This document shows positions 2,038 to 13,122 of a stretch of DNA of 13,144 nucleotides, one piece after another. The stretch covers positions 1 to 13,144 of the forward strand of contig MTSL01000031.1 of NCBI GenBank assembly GCA_002794465.1, given 5' to 3'. Source of the DNA: Paramicrosporidium saccamoebae KSL3. Lineage: Eukaryota > Fungi > Cryptomycota. Below the pieces are notes generated by a model that did not search any database, was not told where the DNA came from, and saw nothing but the letters and a program-made list of their open reading frames with translations. Every line of letters starts with the position of its first letter. The first letter of the stretch is position 1. The position numbers and the translations under genes were made by a program.

Positions 2038-2674
2038 ATAAACAAGTCCCTTATCCCATTTTCACTAGCATGACCTAACTTTTGTCCATATAGCTTTGAG
2101 ATGTCAACAACGAGAGCCCTCGTGAATAATTCAGGCGATACTCTTTATCGCGGAGTAGACCGACTGCCCCAGACGTTTCGTGCGAGAAGCTCGTCTATTG
2201 ATTTATAAGCTCGCAATCAAGGGCCGATACGTGGTCAAATTACGCAGCCATCGAATCTCTCATCTTTTTCATTGAGCTTCCCACAAGGCGAAGGGTCAAT
2301 TTACGTTTAAATCCTCTTTTAGTGGGGTACAGAGGAAAAGCCTCTACTGGCGCCGGAACGCAGCCTCCCCACCACAAACTCTTCAATTGCATTCCAAAGA
2401 TCATTAAGACCGAAACGTGACGCGTATCTACTGCTATATTACGATCCAGACTCTTAGAGTATCCAAAGCCACTTAGATACAAGACCACCTGGCCATTTTA
2501 AAACTGAAGCATCTATCAACGGGAGATTGCAAAATTGGAACGCTACAAACTTTTAGACCCGTTTTATTTACATTGAGACTTCAGCTACCACCAACACTAC
2601 GGGCGCGGATAATGGGGAGGCGGCTCTACCGGTATTTCAACTTGAGAAGATAGCTCCAGAATGTCTTTTTTGGC
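1875..2674. repeat. Tandem duplication copy B
   Basis: Partner of 1-797. Core 2135-2364 differs from 261-490 at only 9 positions by my count. Confidence 0.95.
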
Positions 2675-3649
2675 AGGCGACGAAGCGCCAATAGGCGTTT
2701 TGCTGGCTTTTGTGCATCGAAATCCAATCCGCACGGTCAATTTTGTGGCCAACAATAGTTTCACGCGCCTGGATTTGGATATTTCAATTTTTAGCACCAC
2801 TTGATATATACAGCTGAACATTTCGGACACTACTGACGCCGGAGTGTTAGCCGGCAACTTGATCTTGAATGTGTACGCGCCGCAAGCGTCCTTTGGAAAC
2901 AATAATTCGCCATGCGACACAACCTCATCCACAGTACTCCAATTTTTTCCTGAGAAGCATGCAGATGCATTGCGCTCTAGAAATAAGGTGACACGATGGA
3001 AAGATTTTAAGAAGCCGTAGCGGTCGATTTCGACAATAACGGGGATATCTTCGCCGGCTTGAAAAACATCCCTTTCCACACTCAATTTGACAACCATAGC
3101 TCTCGCGGCCATACACATGCCCTCATTGAGAACAATCTCATTGTATGTATCTGTCGATACCGGTGTAAGCAGCTTTATCACCCTGAAATCTCTTGTCACA
3201 TGCATGTCCATTGCGTTCGGGAAGATTACAGTGGCTGTAATTTGGTGCGCAATCTCCGCCAAATGCCGACCTGAACATATAGGAATCGCACAGGTTTGTG
3301 ATATATCCGATGACAGCACAAACTTGAACGGCAGTTCCATCATCCCCACATTCAAAACTCCTGGCGGCACATAAGTATCGTCTTTTCCTACTGTGTTTGC
3401 CAGTCTTAGCTCAAAAGGCCTATAATTATCCCCGCTGTTGGGTTTTTTCGGATCTGGCACCCAGTTTGCGGAAACACGGCAGTAGCATTGGATGTTAATG
3501 CCACTATGCTCAACACAACGGCGAATACGCAGGATGATTGTGCCTTGTACTGCGCTACCCGCAGTGTAGTGAGACTGGGAAATTTTGATTTCCGCATCGA
3601 CTCCGTTGACTAATGACTTGCCAGAATACTCGGATATGGGTCTATTCAT
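2597..3649 (-). CDS. Alpha-arrestin-like protein 1 with C-terminal PPxY motif
   Basis: 350-aa ORF with HYTAGSAVQGTIIL, MELPFKFVL, VFQAGEDIPVIVEID, KLPANTPAS and CIYQVVLKI. It ends in PPHY (PPxY). AATAAA on the minus strand lies ~30 nt after the stop. Confidence 0.8.
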   Translation of the reverse strand: MNRPISEYSGKSLVNGVDAEIKISQSHYTAGSAVQGTIILRIRRCVEHSGINIQCYCRVSANWVPDPKKPNSGDNYRPFELRLANTVGKDDTYVPPGVLNVGMMELPFKFVLSSDISQTCAIPICSGRHLAEIAHQITATVIFPNAMDMHVTRDFRVIKLLTPVSTDTYNEIVLNEGMCMAARAMVVKLSVERDVFQAGEDIPVIVEIDRYGFLKSFHRVTLFLERNASACFSGKNWSTVDEVVSHGELLFPKDACGAYTFKIKLPANTPASVVSEMFSCIYQVVLKIEISKSRRVKLLLATKLTVRIGFRCTKASKTPIGASSPAKKDILELSSQVEIPVEPPPHYPRP

Positions 3650-4048: not shown

Positions 4049-7209
<3,161 letters not shown>

Positions 7210-7244
7210 ACAACACGTTAGTTATCGAAAGCTATTTATTGTCA

Positions 7245-7598
7245 TTATGCTGACTGTGCCATTGCATTACTGCCACCCGCCATGTACATCTTTCCGCTAT
7301 TCGACGTTCCCGTGTCCGACGACGATTGAGCATCCGAATTTACAAGTTTCGGTTTGCTCTGCTTCCCAAAAGTATGTCTCACCGACTTGTTTGTATTCCG
7401 GAAGGCGGTTGTAGTGGCGCGCTTCATCTTCTTGAACGTAAAGCCATACTTGATGCGCTGCCATGCGAATTTGAAGCTTGCCGGCCTGCTTCGTCCGTCA
7501 GTCACAACTATACATTAGCCATTATATGTAATCTTACAAAGCCAGCCGCCATATATCCAGAGCGAGATGATTATGAAGGTTGCTATTAGCCAACGCAT
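7245..7598 (-). CDS. Hypothetical 107-aa protein with N-terminal TM/signal anchor, 2 exons (7598-7538, 7507-7245)
   Basis: A consensus 30-nt intron 7508-7537 (GTAAGA...GCTAAT.GTATAG) joins MRWLIATFIIISLWIYGGWL to FVTDGRSRPASFKFAWQRIKYGF...AMAQSA*. AATAAA follows the stop. No family recognised. Confidence 0.65.
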
Positions 7599-7712
7599 TG
7601 TGGAGGAACATGGTGGGAGACGAGCTTATTAGAGAGCTGAGACGAAATTCAGTATTGACCAATGAAATTTCCCTCTGCCCTATTGTGCTGACCAATTACT
7701 ATACAAAAGACT

Positions 7713-7925
7713 TTATTGGCCAGGAAGGCGGGGGGAATGGAAATGTGAATGCGAATGGGAATGAGAATAGGAATGGAGATGTGAGTGTGAATGAGAATGT
7801 TGATTCTCCCATGTTTGGATACTATGCTGGCGAGCCTATACCAGTTGGGAATAAACAATTCTTTACCTGTCGCCCATCTATACTGGCGCCGTTATAACTC
7901 ACAAAACACCAATCATAGACAGATA
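7713..7925 (-). CDS. 3' exons of an unresolved gene with (His-Ser)n C-terminus; start not determined
   Basis: A 31-nt intron 7836-7866 (CAG|GTAAAG...TATAG) joins ...GASIDGRQ to ARQHSIQTWENQHSHSHSHLHSYSHSHSHSHFHSPRLPGQ*. The variable base of the hexamer repeat is the Ser wobble position, and the stop is embedded in AATAAA. Confidence 0.5.
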
Positions 7926-8104
7926 CTGCTTAGCAGTCTTACATGTACTGTCTCACAGCATCAAAATAATTGGCTACACATTAGTCGCGTAGTAGGTAAA
8001 CTATCATAGAATTTTAAAGCAGATGGAAGCGCGTTTATTAGCAGGCTCTATGATCCTTTTAGTAAGTACGGGCAGCACTACAGATGCCAAAAGTCGACAA
8101 TCCG

Positions 8105-8533
8105 CTATTTCACATCTGATTCACTTGGAGACATGGTCATGGGTGAATACTTGCCCGAATATCCAGTACTGCCCGAGGGGGTAACCTGTATTTCAAGCTG
8201 TGTCTGATAATGAGATGCTAATCTCTGAGGCTTTGGCTCTGCTACAATATTGTCCAAGGACGTATCTGAAGAACCATGGATAGATTTAAATGTTAGCCAA
8301 ATTGCAAAAATGCTTCCAGGGAAAATGAGCAAGTAACAATATAAAACGTGTACTCCCTGAAACATGCTCCAATAGCAAAGATAGGTCAGGTACGCTAGTG
8401 GGAGAACAAAGGTCAGCACACATGCGATGATGAGCTGCCGACTAAGGCCGTGCGTAATAATGGCCGCAATTGGCGGTAGACAGGCAGCCAGTAAGTAAGA
8501 AAAGGAAACACGAAGCCAGCCTTTCTGATCCAT
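8105..8533 (-). CDS. Divergent PMP3/UPF0057-like proteolipid, 142 aa, with internal insertion and hydrophilic tail
   Basis: YLLAACLPPIAAIITHGLSRQLIIACVLT and FPGSIFAIWLTF match the PMP3 pattern (LPP...G...LT...PG...A). There are 30 residues between LT and PG instead of 5. In-frame introns cannot be excluded. Confidence 0.65.
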   Translation of the reverse strand: MDQKGWLRVSFSYLLAACLPPIAAIITHGLSRQLIIACVLTFVLPLAYLTYLCYWSMFQGVHVLYCYLLIFPGSIFAIWLTFKSIHGSSDTSLDNIVAEPKPQRLASHYQTQLEIQVTPSGSTGYSGKYSPMTMSPSESDVK

Positions 8534-8635
8534 GGTGGTGCATAGTGCACAATTCTTGCTCTATAGGTTCTCATCGGTGACCTTGCTCCATTGGTTCTGC
8601 TGTTCTGTTGCTTACCAATCAAAAAAATGACAATT

Positions 8636-9372
8636 TTATTGCTGCGCAAGAAGCTTGGAAGCCAGATCGTGTTGACGGGTTATGCGTCGCTGACGGCTCA
8701 GCATATCGGACAGGTCCTCCGCGGGGGCTTTCGACTCTTCCAAAGTCGAAGTCTCGGTCAGCACGGTCCGAGCGCGACGCAGCTTGGCAACTAACTGTGG
8801 GATGCTCTAAACTATGAATAATAAAGACCCAGAGCTACCTGATTCAGGCCCTTTAGCTTCTCAAGTTGCTGGATTAGGCCCTCAAGCGCTAGCTCGTTCA
8901 TTTCAAGATTAACCTCCATCGGCGCCAAAGTCTCCTTTACACCGGGCATTGCCCGCTCCAAATCTTCCAGTTGCATAAAGAATCGCTCTCTAATATTGTC
9001 TGGACATGTGCGACGCAGAGCGGCAATTTTGACGAGCAGTTCGTCAGTTTCTGATTGCAGCCCCTCCAGTTTTGCCTCCAGCTCAGAATCTACTTCTTCG
9101 CCCACTACCAGTTATGACAAGAGTTGCTCGAATACTGCCACTATCCACAGTCAGACTATCAGTGTCCACGCCGTCAATTTGCGCATTCTGTCCGATGATG
9201 GAAAACACGTCGTCGAGGAACTTGCAATTAGTCTCATCTACCAGCATACCCTGTCTCGCTGTTCCTGAGTGGTGGTGAAACTGCTCTCGTCCAAATACTT
9301 TTTGAACTCGTCGCGGAGGAATTGAAGGTCTTTTGGACTCTCTAGTGGAATTTTTAGCTCGTTAAATGTCAT
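8636..9372 (-). CDS. NSL1: Kinetochore Mis12/MIND complex subunit Nsl1/Mis14-like, 4 exons (9372-9250, 9220-9136, 9104-8839, 8806-8636), 214 aa
   Basis: Three introns (29, 31, 32 nt) give MTFNELKIPLESPKDLQFLRDEF...FLDDVFSIIGQNAQIDG...DSELEAKLEGLQSETDELLVKIAALRRTCP...LKGLNQSIPQLVAKLRRARTVL. This matches my recollection of the Mis14 pattern (VAxLRRxxP; LPxxVAKLERA). The intron 2 donor could instead be 6 nt upstream. Confidence 0.75.
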
Positions 9373-9463
9373 CGGTTTATTCAATAACGAGTTTCTTTTC
9401 GCGCCTTGAATTCGACTATATTTGTGATGGTGGCAAGGCGGGAAGCCAGCCTCATTGATAGGT

Positions 9464-9768
9464 CTATACGGGTGATCCTGCCGAGGCAGGAGAAGTAATT
9501 GCCTTCTCCAAATCCTTCCTCTCTTTCTCCTCCCTCTTTTGTCGCTCATACTCATCATGGCCATCAAGTCCGCCAAGGATTACATAGAATGCAAAGATGA
9601 TTCCTACAAATTGGCCCATGTGATCTGAATACCTGGAACAAAAAATAGGATTGTGAGAATAAAGCTAATGCACCAAACTGTTCCACAACCGCGCTCCATC
9701 ATGACTGCCACGGGCGGCAAGATGACTGCAAACACTACCTTGAGACAGTCCTTGCATGCTACAGGCAT
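9464..9768 (-). CDS. PMP3: PMP3/UPF0057 family proteolipid with charged tail, 91 aa, exons 9768-9633 and 9603-9464
   Basis: MPVACKDCLKVVFAVILPPVAVMMERGCGTVWCISFILTILFFVP|GIIFAFYVILGGLDGHDEYERQKREEKERKDLEKAITSPASAGSPV*. 29-nt phase-1 intron in the Gly codon. Confidence 0.9.
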
Positions 9769-9852
9769 TCGAAGGTGGATCTAAGAATAGTAACATGGCG
9801 AGTCCCGCCAATAAGTAGTTGTACCACTGGCTAGATTTATTAACACTAGCTA

Positions 9853-10240
9853 TTACTGAGGACCTATGACTAGTGGTTTGTTATCAGCACCAGCTGGTGT
9901 TGCGGTAGCCGGCTTTTCTCCAATTGTCACGGCGGGCTGGGTAGCGCTCGATTGTCCAGGCGCGTTAGTCTGCGGAGTTGCGGTTTGAGACTCCTTCTGC
10001 AGGATCACTGGTCTGTCAGTGTACTTGTCGCAGGTGCAGATGATAAAGAACGCATGGACGATTCCTACAATCTCAGTGATCCATCTCCAGGCGCTTACCC
10101 GGAAGCCATCCACAGAGCGTGAGGATGATGTTTAGGACGAGTTGGGGACCACAGCCACGGTCAAGTAGCACTGCAATGGGCGGTAGGATGATTGCAAAAA
10201 GGATTTTGCAGCAGTCGAGCCATGTTAGTGTTGTTGCCAT
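9853..10240 (-). CDS. PMP3: PMP3/UPF0057 family proteolipid with Thr/Pro/Ala/Gln-rich tail, 117 aa, exons 10240-10099 and 10064-9853
   Basis: MATTLTWLDCCKILFAIILPPIAVLLDRGCGPQLVLNIILTLCGWLP|GIVHAFFIICTCDKY...VIGPQ*. 34-nt phase-1 intron (GTAAGC...TTGTAG). Confidence 0.9.
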
Positions 10241-10270
10241 TCTTTGTTTGGTCTAAAAATAGAATAATGC

Positions 10271-10280
10271 CTTTTATATA
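10271..10280 (-). promoter_or_regulatory. TATA box for the 10240 PMP3 gene
   Basis: TATATAAAAG on the minus strand, ~30 nt upstream of the ATG. Confidence 0.55.
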
Positions 10281-10506
10281 CGATGGCCGGGCAAAGAACA
10301 GAAATTATTCTGTAATAGTCTTATAGACTGTGCCACTTTTTTGTTGTGATAGCGGCACTCTGTACGTCCACTTGTAATCACTATCACTACTACTACCATT
10401 ACCATTGTTTAATAGTCACTTTACATTGTCGGATCCATGAACTTGTCCTTTTATTGACAAAACATGCAGTAGTTTTACTTTCCTCTGGCCAGCTGTTCAA
10501 ACTCGG

Positions 10507-10728
10507 CTATACTGGGTCGTCTGCGCAGTGGAGAATGACGCAGTATGCGTGAATCATCCCTAAAATCTAGTCGAACTGGATGAGAGGGTTACCTGGGATC
10601 CATCCAAGCAAGGTCAAGAGACAATTCAAAAGCAGCGAGCAACCACAACCTCGCTCCAAGAACACGGCAATCGGAGGGAAAAAGAATGCCCAGAAAATCT
10701 TACATATATCTCCACATGTAACAGTCAT
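10507..10728 (-). CDS. PMP3: Cys-rich PMP3/UPF0057 family proteolipid, 62 aa, exons 10728-10593 and 10559-10507
   Basis: MTVTCGDICKIFWAFFFPPIAVFLERGCGCSLLLNCLLTLLGWIP|GMIHAYCVILHCADDPV*. 33-nt phase-1 intron. Absent from the ORF track. Confidence 0.9.
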
Positions 10729-10762
10729 GGCTCAAGCGTCGGCGGCCAGACCTGATTTGTTT

Positions 10763-10774
10763 GCTTATATAAGC
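10763..10774. promoter_or_regulatory. Palindromic TATA-like element GCTTATATAAGC in the divergent PMP3 promoter
   Basis: Perfect 12-bp palindrome 35 nt upstream of ATG 10728, inside the 188-nt gap between divergent PMP3 genes. Confidence 0.45.
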
Positions 10775-10916
10775 TCGTTGTCTATTTTTAGCATTTCTTG
10801 AGTCGGTCGGACCAGTGACGAGGGCCGACCAATCGATCCCGACAATAGCCAAGATTTAGTTTCGAGCATAATCCGTCGGAAATATAAGGCGTGTGATCAT
10901 TAGACATGCAACTCAA

Positions 10917-11121
10917 ATGGCAGTGACCACGTCGGACATTTGTAAAGTCATTCTGGCAATCTTTCTGCCACCGGCAGCTGTGCTTTGGGAACGGGGATGC
11001 GGCGCAGATTTTTTAATCAACATTGGCCTGACCATTCTCGGCTATATACCTGGTTCATTTCTACGATCGAGACTAATGGGTAGGAATCATTCATGCGCTT
11101 TACATCATCCTCAAGTATTGA
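10917..11121 (+). CDS. PMP3: Canonical PMP3/UPF0057 proteolipid, 57 aa, exons 10917-11052 and 11084-11121
   Basis: MAVTTSDICKVILAIFLPPAAVLWERGCGADFLINIGLTILGYIP|GIIHALYIILKY*. 31-nt intron with GACTAAT branch site. TATAAG at 10883-10888. Confidence 0.95.
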
Positions 11122-11250
11122 TTGGCGGAAACATAGGGGAGTATGCAATAAACTGGCCTTCTGACTTTACACCAGAACACGACCCGCTTTGGTGACTACG
11201 AGCTTAATGCGTACGATATAAAGTTCCGCCGTATTGGCTTTCGGTGGCTC

Positions 11251-11454
11251 ATGGCAGTGACTTTTACAGACATTTGCAAACTTGCCCTTGCGGTGCTACT
11301 CCCACCGCTCGGAGTATTGGCAGAGCGCGGACTGGGAGTTGATCTGCTCATCAATATTGGCCTTACTTTCTTGGGATTCATTCCGGGTAACTAAATCTAC
11401 CAACGTTAAAATGTAGGGATCATACATGCCGTCTATATTATTGTAAAGTATTAA
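11251..11454 (+). CDS. PMP3: Canonical PMP3/UPF0057 proteolipid, 57 aa, exons 11251-11386 and 11417-11454
   Basis: MAVTFTDICKLALAVLLPPLGVLAERGLGVDLLINIGLTFLGFIP|GIIHAVYIIVKY*. 30-nt intron. TATAAAG at 11217-11223 and AATAAA at 11473-11478. Confidence 0.95.
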
Positions 11455-11505
11455 CACAAAGCAATGGATGAAAATAAAAGTCATGACCAGGGAATTGGCC
11501 TATGC

Positions 11506-13122
11506 ATGTTGAGCCGACGGAGCTTCTGCGATGCCAATGAAGACTTGCTAGTCGTCGGTGGCAGATGCATAGAGCATTGTATGCGTTTGTTGGACAAACT
11601 CTCCAATTCCAAACAACGGGGGGACTTGGCCTTGGTTGTTGACCGGCTCGACCAAGTGTCTAATAATCTGTGTTCTATAATCGACTATTCAGGAGCCGTG
11701 TACCGTCTACATCTAGATCGACGTGCTCGTGATAATGCACTCGCAACGGTTGGAAAGGTTTCAGGCTTGATGGCGCAACTAAATGGTGACATTGGCTTGT
11801 ACAAAACGTTAAAGAAGAGCCTCCTCGCCAACAAAGATGAGCAATTTCTCTGCAAAGAGGGTCAAAAGGTCGGAACATCCCTGCTGGCGGATTTTGAAGA
11901 CTATGGCATCAATCTTTCTCCAGGAGCCCGCAAGACATTTGCTAAATTACAGATTGACATTCAGAACATTGGACACGAATTCGAGGATTCATTACAAGAA
12001 CCTCTGCAGTCGTCAATGGTCAGTTTAAGCCAACTTGTCTGCCGACGAGCCGAGGCGGCAAAACTCCTGGGGCACTCGTCTTATGCACATCTTTTTCTCA
12101 AGGACAAAGTACTGACAGATCCCAAGAACGTTCTTAATTTCCTGAATACCTTTGACAAGCCCCAGAATTCAAATATAGCTGAACATCCAGAAGTCCATTC
12201 TGGGCTTTGCTTTGAGTCTATTCTGAAGGTGCTGGCATATTTGAGTCACAATCTGTTTGAAACGAAATTTGTTGCTAATGCAGAGGGTCTGTGGGGCCAT
12301 GATTCTGTTCGTCTTTGTTTTTCAAGCACTTTGGATGATTCCCCCATGGGAACTGTTTACTTTATTATTTCTCAACGAAACTCAGTGACGTGTCATTTTC
12401 CAATTCGCACCTGGAGAATGCGTCCCGCCGAAAACACAGTATATGGCACCAATGACGTGCAAACTCCGATTTGTGTCGTAACCGTCGAGGTTGCAGATAA
12501 GATGAATTTATCGTTCTCTGAAATACAGAGCATTTTCCATGAATTTGGCCATGCGCTGCATACCATTTGCGCAAAGACTATGTTTCACCATCTTTCTGGA
12601 ACTCGTTGCAAATTAGACTTTGCCGAAGTGCCGTCCAATTTGATGGAGATTATTCTCCAAGACTCGCGAATATTCTCCATCCTGGCACCGACACGGAAAT
12701 TTGTCGAGTCTCACCAGAGATGGGTTGCTGACATTGTTTGCCGGGAGGACAATAACAATTCCAGCCAGGCCCAATTGGCCAAGTTTGATCAATTTGTACA
12801 TGGTCTTTCTCACCGTGATTGCAATTCACCTGAAGTGTTTGCTCATCAGGTTCGGCATTGGTGCTCCAAGAACACGAAAAGCCCCACTGAGAGTTTCAAT
12901 CTGCTGAATCAGGTATGTAAATTTCGACACTTGGTCTCCTACGGCGCTGGATACTACAGCTACTTATTTAATCAACGGATTGCAAAGGATATTTGGAAGC
13001 AGTACCTAGATCCCAACTCGCCGTCATATGAGCCCCAAAGGTTTTTAAAAGATGCCTTAAGGTATGGCGGGACTCGCGACACTAGCGACATTCTAGACAG
13101 TTTAAACATTGAAATAGATTGA
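11506..13122 (+). CDS. OCT1: Mitochondrial intermediate peptidase-like M3 metallopeptidase, shortened (538 aa from 11506; ORF is open from 11464)
   Basis: HEFGHALH (HEFGH at 12538-12552), GTRCKLDFAEVPSNLME, HLVSYGAGYYSYLF and A(K)LLGHSSYA are M3A/MIP features. MLSRRSFC at 11506 resembles a mitochondrial presequence. Confidence 0.8.
   Translation: MLSRRSFCDANEDLLVVGGRCIEHCMRLLDKLSNSKQRGDLALVVDRLDQVSNNLCSIIDYSGAVYRLHLDRRARDNALATVGKVSGLMAQLNGDIGLYKTLKKSLLANKDEQFLCKEGQKVGTSLLADFEDYGINLSPGARKTFAKLQIDIQNIGHEFEDSLQEPLQSSMVSLSQLVCRRAEAAKLLGHSSYAHLFLKDKVLTDPKNVLNFLNTFDKPQNSNIAEHPEVHSGLCFESILKVLAYLSHNLFETKFVANAEGLWGHDSVRLCFSSTLDDSPMGTVYFIISQRNSVTCHFPIRTWRMRPAENTVYGTNDVQTPICVVTVEVADKMNLSFSEIQSIFHEFGHALHTICAKTMFHHLSGTRCKLDFAEVPSNLMEIILQDSRIFSILAPTRKFVESHQRWVADIVCREDNNNSSQAQLAKFDQFVHGLSHRDCNSPEVFAHQVRHWCSKNTKSPTESFNLLNQVCKFRHLVSYGAGYYSYLFNQRIAKDIWKQYLDPNSPSYEPQRFLKDALRYGGTRDTSDILDSLNIEID

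Follow-up and report, generated by a model that had tools for sequence, protein, structure and literature searches.

Six Pmp3-type proteolipid genes, five with introns of about 30 nt and most of them unannotated, in the intranuclear parasite Paramicrosporidium saccamoebae

We analysed a window of 13,144 bp, the whole of contig MTSL01000031.1 (assembly GCA_002794465.1) of Paramicrosporidium saccamoebae KSL3, an intranuclear parasite of Saccamoeba in the Rozellomycota, and found six genes of the Pmp3 family, here called A to F, between positions 8105 and 11454. The six are new, mostly unannotated members of a known family and, taking structure, origin and predicted function together, they very probably represent an old, locally duplicated set of Pmp3/Sna-type proteolipid genes. 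An earlier note on this DNA, made from its letters without database searches, had proposed six such genes in this span. Reading both strands and splicing by script, we recovered the same span and all six proposed start codons (8533, 9768, 10240 and 10728 on the minus strand, 10917 and 11251 on the plus strand), and A and E do diverge from one shared central spacer, which measures 188 bp. The description "six genes in 3.3 kb" holds for the Pmp3 genes, but an unrelated gene with a Pfam Mis14 match also lies inside the span (8636-9372) and separates D from C; the uninterrupted Pmp3 run is C-B-A-E-F, over 2.0 kb. A six-frame scan of the window with a hidden Markov model (HMM) returned, besides D, five exon-1 pieces, each followed closely by an exon-2 piece in another frame, with everything else at noise level, and it revealed no seventh Pmp3 copy or pseudogene in the window. 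Rfam and tRNA scans gave no matches.

We performed a Pfam PF01679 (Pmp3) scan of the spliced proteins, a check that had been proposed for this locus, and all six passed the gathering cut-off of 22.9 bits. E scored 86.5 bits (E value 1.1e-24), A 75.6 bits (3e-21), F 74.6 bits (6.1e-21), B 72.4 bits (2.9e-20) and C 63.8 bits (1.5e-17), each over profile positions 1-48 or 1-49, while D passed marginally with 24.9 bits. In A, B, C, E and F, hydropathy places hydrophobic stretches at about residues 1-26 and 27-60, which we read as two putative helices joined by an ERGCG loop. An alignment of the six paralogues with three fungal Pmp3 proteins shows no variation at residues P18, P19, G27, L38, T39, P45, G46 and A50, and the LPP motif of helix 1 and P-G-x-x-x-A of helix 2 are conserved. 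After splicing, E has exactly 57 aa and shares 86% of its residues, from end to end, with Pmp3 proteins of the same length in Dikarya; F is up to 77% identical to other fungal Pmp3 proteins. Protein identity between paralogues is 45-58%, rising to 72% for the E/F pair, and D is 22-41% identical to the others in local alignments of very different lengths. Within the core of about 60 aa, A has seven cysteines and B six, compared with one or two in E and F. The B orthologue on a metagenome contig described below keeps the CC pair and the LTLCGW cysteine.

Five of the genes (A, B, C, E and F) are each interrupted once by a GT..AG stretch of 29-34 nt that ends in TAG (Table 1). Scripted splicing confirmed that the site is identical in the five, as had been noticed from the letters: exon 1 is 136 nt long (142 nt in B), placing the interruption in phase 1, where it splits the Gly codon of the P-G motif in the second helix. 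If it is retained, an in-frame stop follows and the unspliced open reading frames (ORFs) terminate early; in each of the five, the conserved second half of helix 2 (G-I-I-H-A-x-Y) continues in the correct frame after 29-34 nt. Based on the GT..AG ends, the restored frame and a size and style matching the other introns of the contig, we take the five interruptions to be spliceosomal (U2-type) introns. The contig as a whole carries 12 introns in 13 kb, all 29-37 nt long and starting with GT, with 11 of the 12 ending in TAG and a CTAAT-like branch site in several. Seven of these served as controls, 29-37 nt long and of the same style: four of 30-37 nt in the gene of a SERCA-type P-type ATPase, which were read by hand, and three of 29-32 nt in the Mis14-like gene. 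Introns of about 30 nt are contig-wide and not peculiar to the Pmp3 array. We found no specific description of intron size for the P. saccamoebae genome in the literature, and the word "intron" does not occur in the genome paper. The site itself has a precedent, as the intron of an annotated Mortierella sp. Pmp3 gene follows nt 136 of the coding sequence, in phase 1 and in the same Gly codon; the intron position is hence an inherited fungal one and not special to the array. In Rhizopus and Spinellus the nearest Pmp3 intron lies two codons downstream, and in Psilocybe four codons downstream; the introns of the Rhizopus microsporus Pmp3 gene are 55-75 nt long.

The strongest support for the predicted introns comes from a relative that was recovered through a protein search with C. 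This search returned a single relative (P0127), encoded on a 3046-bp contig of an uncultured organism from a Joint Genome Institute (JGI) metagenome, hereafter L008. L008 keeps orthologues of B, C, the Mis14-like gene and D in the order and orientation of the window, as reciprocal best matches with 71% identity over 58 aa for B, 63% over 93 aa for C, 73% over 215 aa for the Mis14-like protein and 42% over 146 aa for D. At the P-G site, the intron of B is 29 nt long in L008 and 34 nt here, and that of C 30 nt and 29 nt, respectively, with the flanking exons in frame, a pattern of conserved exons around GT..AG spacers of drifting length that argues for splicing. The Mis14-like orthologue is also 214 aa long, with three introns in corresponding parts of the gene. 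Other searches were less productive. With B, we obtained two weak matches only, one of them bacterial, and metagenome scans gave no relatives of B or of the neighbouring M3 peptidase. The collection searched, which included Logan assemblies, contained nothing closer to spliced E than 86% identity. The contig of P0008, the best match of F outside this genome and among the best of E, was also inspected; it carries a lone Pmp3 gene, with no synteny to the window.

Table 1. Pmp3-type genes and other genes and regions of the contig discussed in the text; positions are those of the window.
Feature	Coding sequence or region	Strand	Introns	Length	Remarks
Pmp3 A	10507-10728	minus	10560-10592 (33 nt)	62 aa	Seven cysteines; short acidic end
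Pmp3 B	9853-10240	minus	10065-10098 (34 nt)	117 aa	Cys-rich core; tail rich in Pro/Thr/Gln/Ala
Pmp3 C	9464-9768	minus	9604-9632 (29 nt)	91 aa	Charged C-terminal tail
Pmp3 D	8105-8533	minus	none	142 aa	Divergent domain; 25-residue insertion (8333-8407); hydrophilic 60-aa tail
Pmp3 E	10917-11121	plus	11053-11083 (31 nt)	57 aa	Canonical tail-less fungal Pmp3
Pmp3 F	11251-11454	plus	11387-11416 (30 nt)	57 aa	Second tail-less copy
A/E divergent intergenic region	10729-10916			188 bp	One TATA box per gene
Mis14-like kinetochore protein gene	8636-9372	minus	9221-9249, 9105-9135, 8807-8838	214 aa	Not of the Pmp3 family
SERCA-type P-type ATPase gene	4049-7209	plus	4170-4206, 4440-4469, 6732-6765, 6900-6929	1009 aa	

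The outlier of the set is D. Its PF01679 score rises to 41.4 bits when the 25-residue insertion is removed in silico, a manipulation that is diagnostic only, and comparison with a profile of the paralogues and fungal Pmp3 proteins by hhalign gave a probability of 83%. A phmmer search against 1.84 billion representatives returned D alone. The 25 extra residues are hydrophobic and stand before the P-G motif of D. A single-sequence AlphaFold model shows three helices, at low confidence (predicted local distance difference test score, pLDDT, of 62.6), and hydropathy suggests the same. D is a divergent version, probably with three helices; the two-helix architecture known for the family fits A, B, C, E and F by hydropathy, and D departs from it.

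The L008 orthologue of D (positions 2109-2676 of L008) scores 40.8 bits against PF01679. It carries two phase-1 introns, at 2254-2290 and 2366-2398, each splitting a Gly codon; they flank an exon of 75 nt, and the first aligns with the P-G site of the family, where D of the window has no intron. This arrangement suggests that the helix-2 segment was duplicated within the gene along with its intron, and we read the D gene of the window as having since lost both introns precisely. Read in this manner, the comparison shows how a very small gene underwent a small internal duplication and lost introns precisely. Three other accounts of the insertion were considered. A 37-nt GT..AG intron in D (about 8357-8393) would give a product covering only profile positions 4-36, at 24.0 bits, and was rejected; across that region unspliced D has the same length as its spliced L008 orthologue. 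The same comparison makes a 51-nt in-frame GT..AG candidate (8357-8407), possible on the sequence of D alone, unnecessary. We also dropped the idea that the insertion is an exonised P-G intron, because the P-G motif, at FPGSIFA, comes after the insertion according to MAFFT, Pfam and hhalign alike.

Next, we considered the age of the family. Third codon positions are 24-38% identical between paralogues, a level that indicates saturation, and the introns cannot be aligned; the sole residual DNA repeat consists of the 3' splice site and the first codons of exon 2. Taken together, the saturated silent sites, the invariant residues and the L008 orthologues of B, C and D point to an old duplication followed by purifying selection, and the earlier statement that the expansion is old and retained is borne out by the saturation and by the conserved order of B, C and D in L008. 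For A, E and F the support for this history is internal only. Dating the duplications by similarity was uninformative, as each paralogue is about as close to Pmp3 proteins from other fungal phyla as to its neighbours.

None of the six reading frames is broken, their start, stop and splice signals are all present, and signals for transcription accompany them. A TATA box stands 35-43 nt before the ATG of A, B, E and F: for A it reads TATATAAG (10764-10771, 43 nt 5' of the ATG), for E ATATAAGG (35 nt), and in B and F it lies at 38-40 nt and 35 nt, respectively. TATA-like motifs are scarce in the window, at about 0.001 per nt, and four TATA boxes at one distance from the start codons are not chance. 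An AATAAA follows the stop codon within 12-83 nt in all six genes, with the 12-nt spacing found in B.

We propose that a Pmp3 gene already bearing its intron was duplicated at the DNA level and that the copies then diverged into three kinds: the tail-less canonical E and F, the short Cys-rich A, and the tailed, Sna-like B, C and D. Along this path D would have gained a second copy of its helix-2 segment and would later have lost its introns in this species. If they resemble their homologues in yeast and plants, E and F would work at the plasma membrane, dampening hyperpolarisation and cation uptake and influencing lipid-dependent endocytosis, and B, C and D may be sorted to endomembranes through their cytosolic tails.

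Several points weigh against this explanation. All statements on function are carried over from yeast and plants, and the PPxY motif is not found in the tails of B, C or D, whose sequences were read directly. The membership of D in the family comes from profile methods only, with a marginal Pfam score. The splice junctions are predicted from comparison, and the relative used for it is represented by a single metagenome contig. L008 starts inside B, so that this close relative shows no orthologue of A, E or F. Finally, a deposited 283-aa protein model in which the Mis14-like gene is joined to part of a Pmp3 gene (see below) was, oddly, not returned by protein searches with B or C.

The first of the competing explanations is a lineage-specific adaptive expansion, in which the array would be a specialised membrane module for intranuclear parasitism or spore survival, unusual in a genome of 3750 genes. 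We regard this as unlikely. The genome was fairly called minimal by the earlier note (7.3 Mb, 47% GC, 3750 predicted genes). In favour of an expansion, six copies make up a high share of the predicted genes, B and D have no detectable close relatives beyond L008, and A and B are unusually cysteine-rich. Yet families of 4-10 members with both tailed and tail-less types are normal in yeast and plants (PMC7835403, PMC6288971), which leaves the "specialised membrane module" of the earlier note unsupported, and no functional tie is apparent among the neighbouring genes. We also looked for similar arrays in other fungi, scanning six Pmp3 loci in six frames with the HMM over 6-10 kb to either side. 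None of these sampled loci had more than two copies, a finding in favour of an expansion, and one only, the tandem pair of Piptocephalis, had a second copy nearby, which counts against it. Five or six Pmp3 genes in a row are not routine, though the family size is ordinary.

It is less probable still that some of the duplicates are silent or in decay, with A, D or F the most plausible candidates, and that E alone does the Pmp3 job. The low Pfam score of D and its lack of phmmer relatives would fit such decay, as would the want of close-relative orthologues for A, E and F. Against it stand the six intact frames; P18, P19, P45, G46 and A50, kept in every copy despite saturated silent sites; the intact L008 orthologues of B, C and D, with the stretches AEPKPQR and YSPMT shared between the two D tails; and the fixed distance of the TATA boxes of A, B, E and F from the ATG. 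Finally, that the interruptions are not introns, and that the genes encode unspliced peptides only, 47-55 aa long or, for E counted from an upstream GTG, 100 aa, or that the breaks reflect assembly errors, is scarcely credible: such unspliced ORFs do exist, but the missing half of helix 2 follows in the correct frame in five of five genes, the same arrangement recurs with other intron lengths in the independent L008 assembly, an annotated Mortierella gene has an intron at the same codon, and the SERCA-type and Mis14-like genes cannot be read through without seven like introns.

An old, locally duplicated family is thus the explanation we prefer, and most of it is missing from the deposited annotation, which was produced with MAKER and Augustus trained on Rhizopus oryzae, plus spore RNA. 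The earlier note had predicted that ORF-based annotation would miss most of the array. Most of it was indeed missed, the record holding D and one fusion, although the annotation was of the MAKER/Augustus kind and not ORF-based. The fusion is a 283-aa model on the minus strand (8636-10240) with both Pmp3 and Mis14 Pfam matches, in which a Pmp3 part is joined to the Mis14-like gene; C has no separate model and lies inside the span of the fused one, and A, E and F are left without any model. The five spliced proteins (A, B, C, E and F) are absent from a collection of about 15 billion proteins. For the Mis14-like gene, a 224-aa reconstruction matched Pfam PF08641 (Mis14) with 36.5 bits, and corrected splicing gives the 214-aa product of Table 1. 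The deposited SERCA-type model is 862 aa long and ends at 6800, with the last residues, about 147, missing. All four kinds of annotation error sit at or beside introns of about 30 nt. The Pmp3 genes may have been overlooked for being tiny and for carrying introns of a length ill-suited to a Rhizopus-trained gene finder.

Introns of about 30 nt are mis-modelled on this contig, and the same fault may occur elsewhere in the genome. The P. saccamoebae genome is widely used for reconstructing microsporidian gene loss, and re-annotation with a suitable intron model could alter gene counts and presence/absence calls for the lineage. A broader reading, which we consider possible but doubtful, is that the clade built its own set of Pmp3 derivatives (a three-helix D, by duplication of helix 2 and its intron, and the Cys-rich A and B) and, more generally, that introns of about 30 nt are mis-modelled throughout the annotation. 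If the mis-modelling were genome-wide, published inferences of gene loss between Rozellomycota and Microsporidia would rest on an incomplete proteome. The Pmp3 genes themselves add little new biology, as the coexistence of tail-less and tailed members in such families is well known; the main value of the locus lies in the annotation gap.

Elsewhere on the contig, the ATG of the M3 peptidase gene (11464-13122) follows the stop codon of F after 9 nt, and the AATAAA of F falls within the peptidase coding sequence, which suggests that the two transcripts overlap. Overlapping transcripts have been reported for microsporidia. The unannotated gap between the ATPase gene and D (7210-8104) contains a degenerate 6/18-nt tandem repeat of GAATGN units at 7733-7800, with about 3.5 copies of 18 nt. 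On the minus strand, at 1024-2037 and 2597-3649, are two adjacent intronless arrestin-domain genes (337 and 350 aa) with Arrestin_N and Arrestin_C matches on record, and these have the look of alpha-arrestin-like paralogues in tandem. The Rsp5 adaptors of yeast include alpha-arrestins as well as Sna3; that the arrestin-domain genes lie near the Pmp3 array is probably a coincidence.

Finally, we compared the array with known Pmp3/RCI2 systems. The family has four members in yeast and eight in Arabidopsis, each with tail-less and tailed types (PMC7835403), and wheat has 10 paralogous RCI2/PMP3 loci per haploid genome, including tandem pairs (PMC6288971). Yeast that lacks Pmp3, which is regarded as a regulator of membrane potential, takes up more Na+ and is more sensitive to salt, and the protein binds phosphoinositides and affects endocytic traffic (PMC7835403). 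E resembles the fungal Pmp3 type (S. cerevisiae Pmp3/Sna1 and 57-aa orthologues) in its 86% identity, its LPP...RGCG...PGIIHA motifs and its two hydrophobic helices; the difference is that two tail-less copies stand side by side here, with introns of just 30-31 nt.

In tailed relatives, tail motifs direct sorting to the vacuole or endosomes, and tailed plant members complement a yeast pmp3 deletion only once the tail is removed (PMC7835403). B, C and D are like tailed Sna2, Sna3 and Sna4 and the plant RCI2 group II (AtRCI2D-G) in having the core plus a hydrophilic C-terminal tail of 35-60 residues (PMC7835403). This is a likeness of architecture, with no orthology shown, and the PPxY motif of Sna3 is one that their tails do not share. 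Proteins of the Sna2 type have tyrosine-based YxxΦ sorting motifs in the C-terminal tail. The tail of D contains a YxxΦ-like YSPM, within the YSPMT present in L008 as well, and B and C have no clear motif; a motif of four residues proves nothing alone. The extra 25-residue hydrophobic segment of D is not described for the tailed class in PMC7835403.

As local duplicates of tiny genes, the genes are also similar to the tandem RCI2/PMP3 pairs of plants, in which each gene retains a single conserved intron (PMC6288971), and to the Piptocephalis pair, whose members lie 1-2 kb apart. The plant introns occupy another site, after about nt 81 in the RCI2/PMP3 genes of Triticeae (cereals) compared with nt 136 here. 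Unlike either kind of pair, the array of P. saccamoebae brings together five or six members within 3.3 kb, on both strands and at a much deeper divergence, with 45-58% identity between its proteins.

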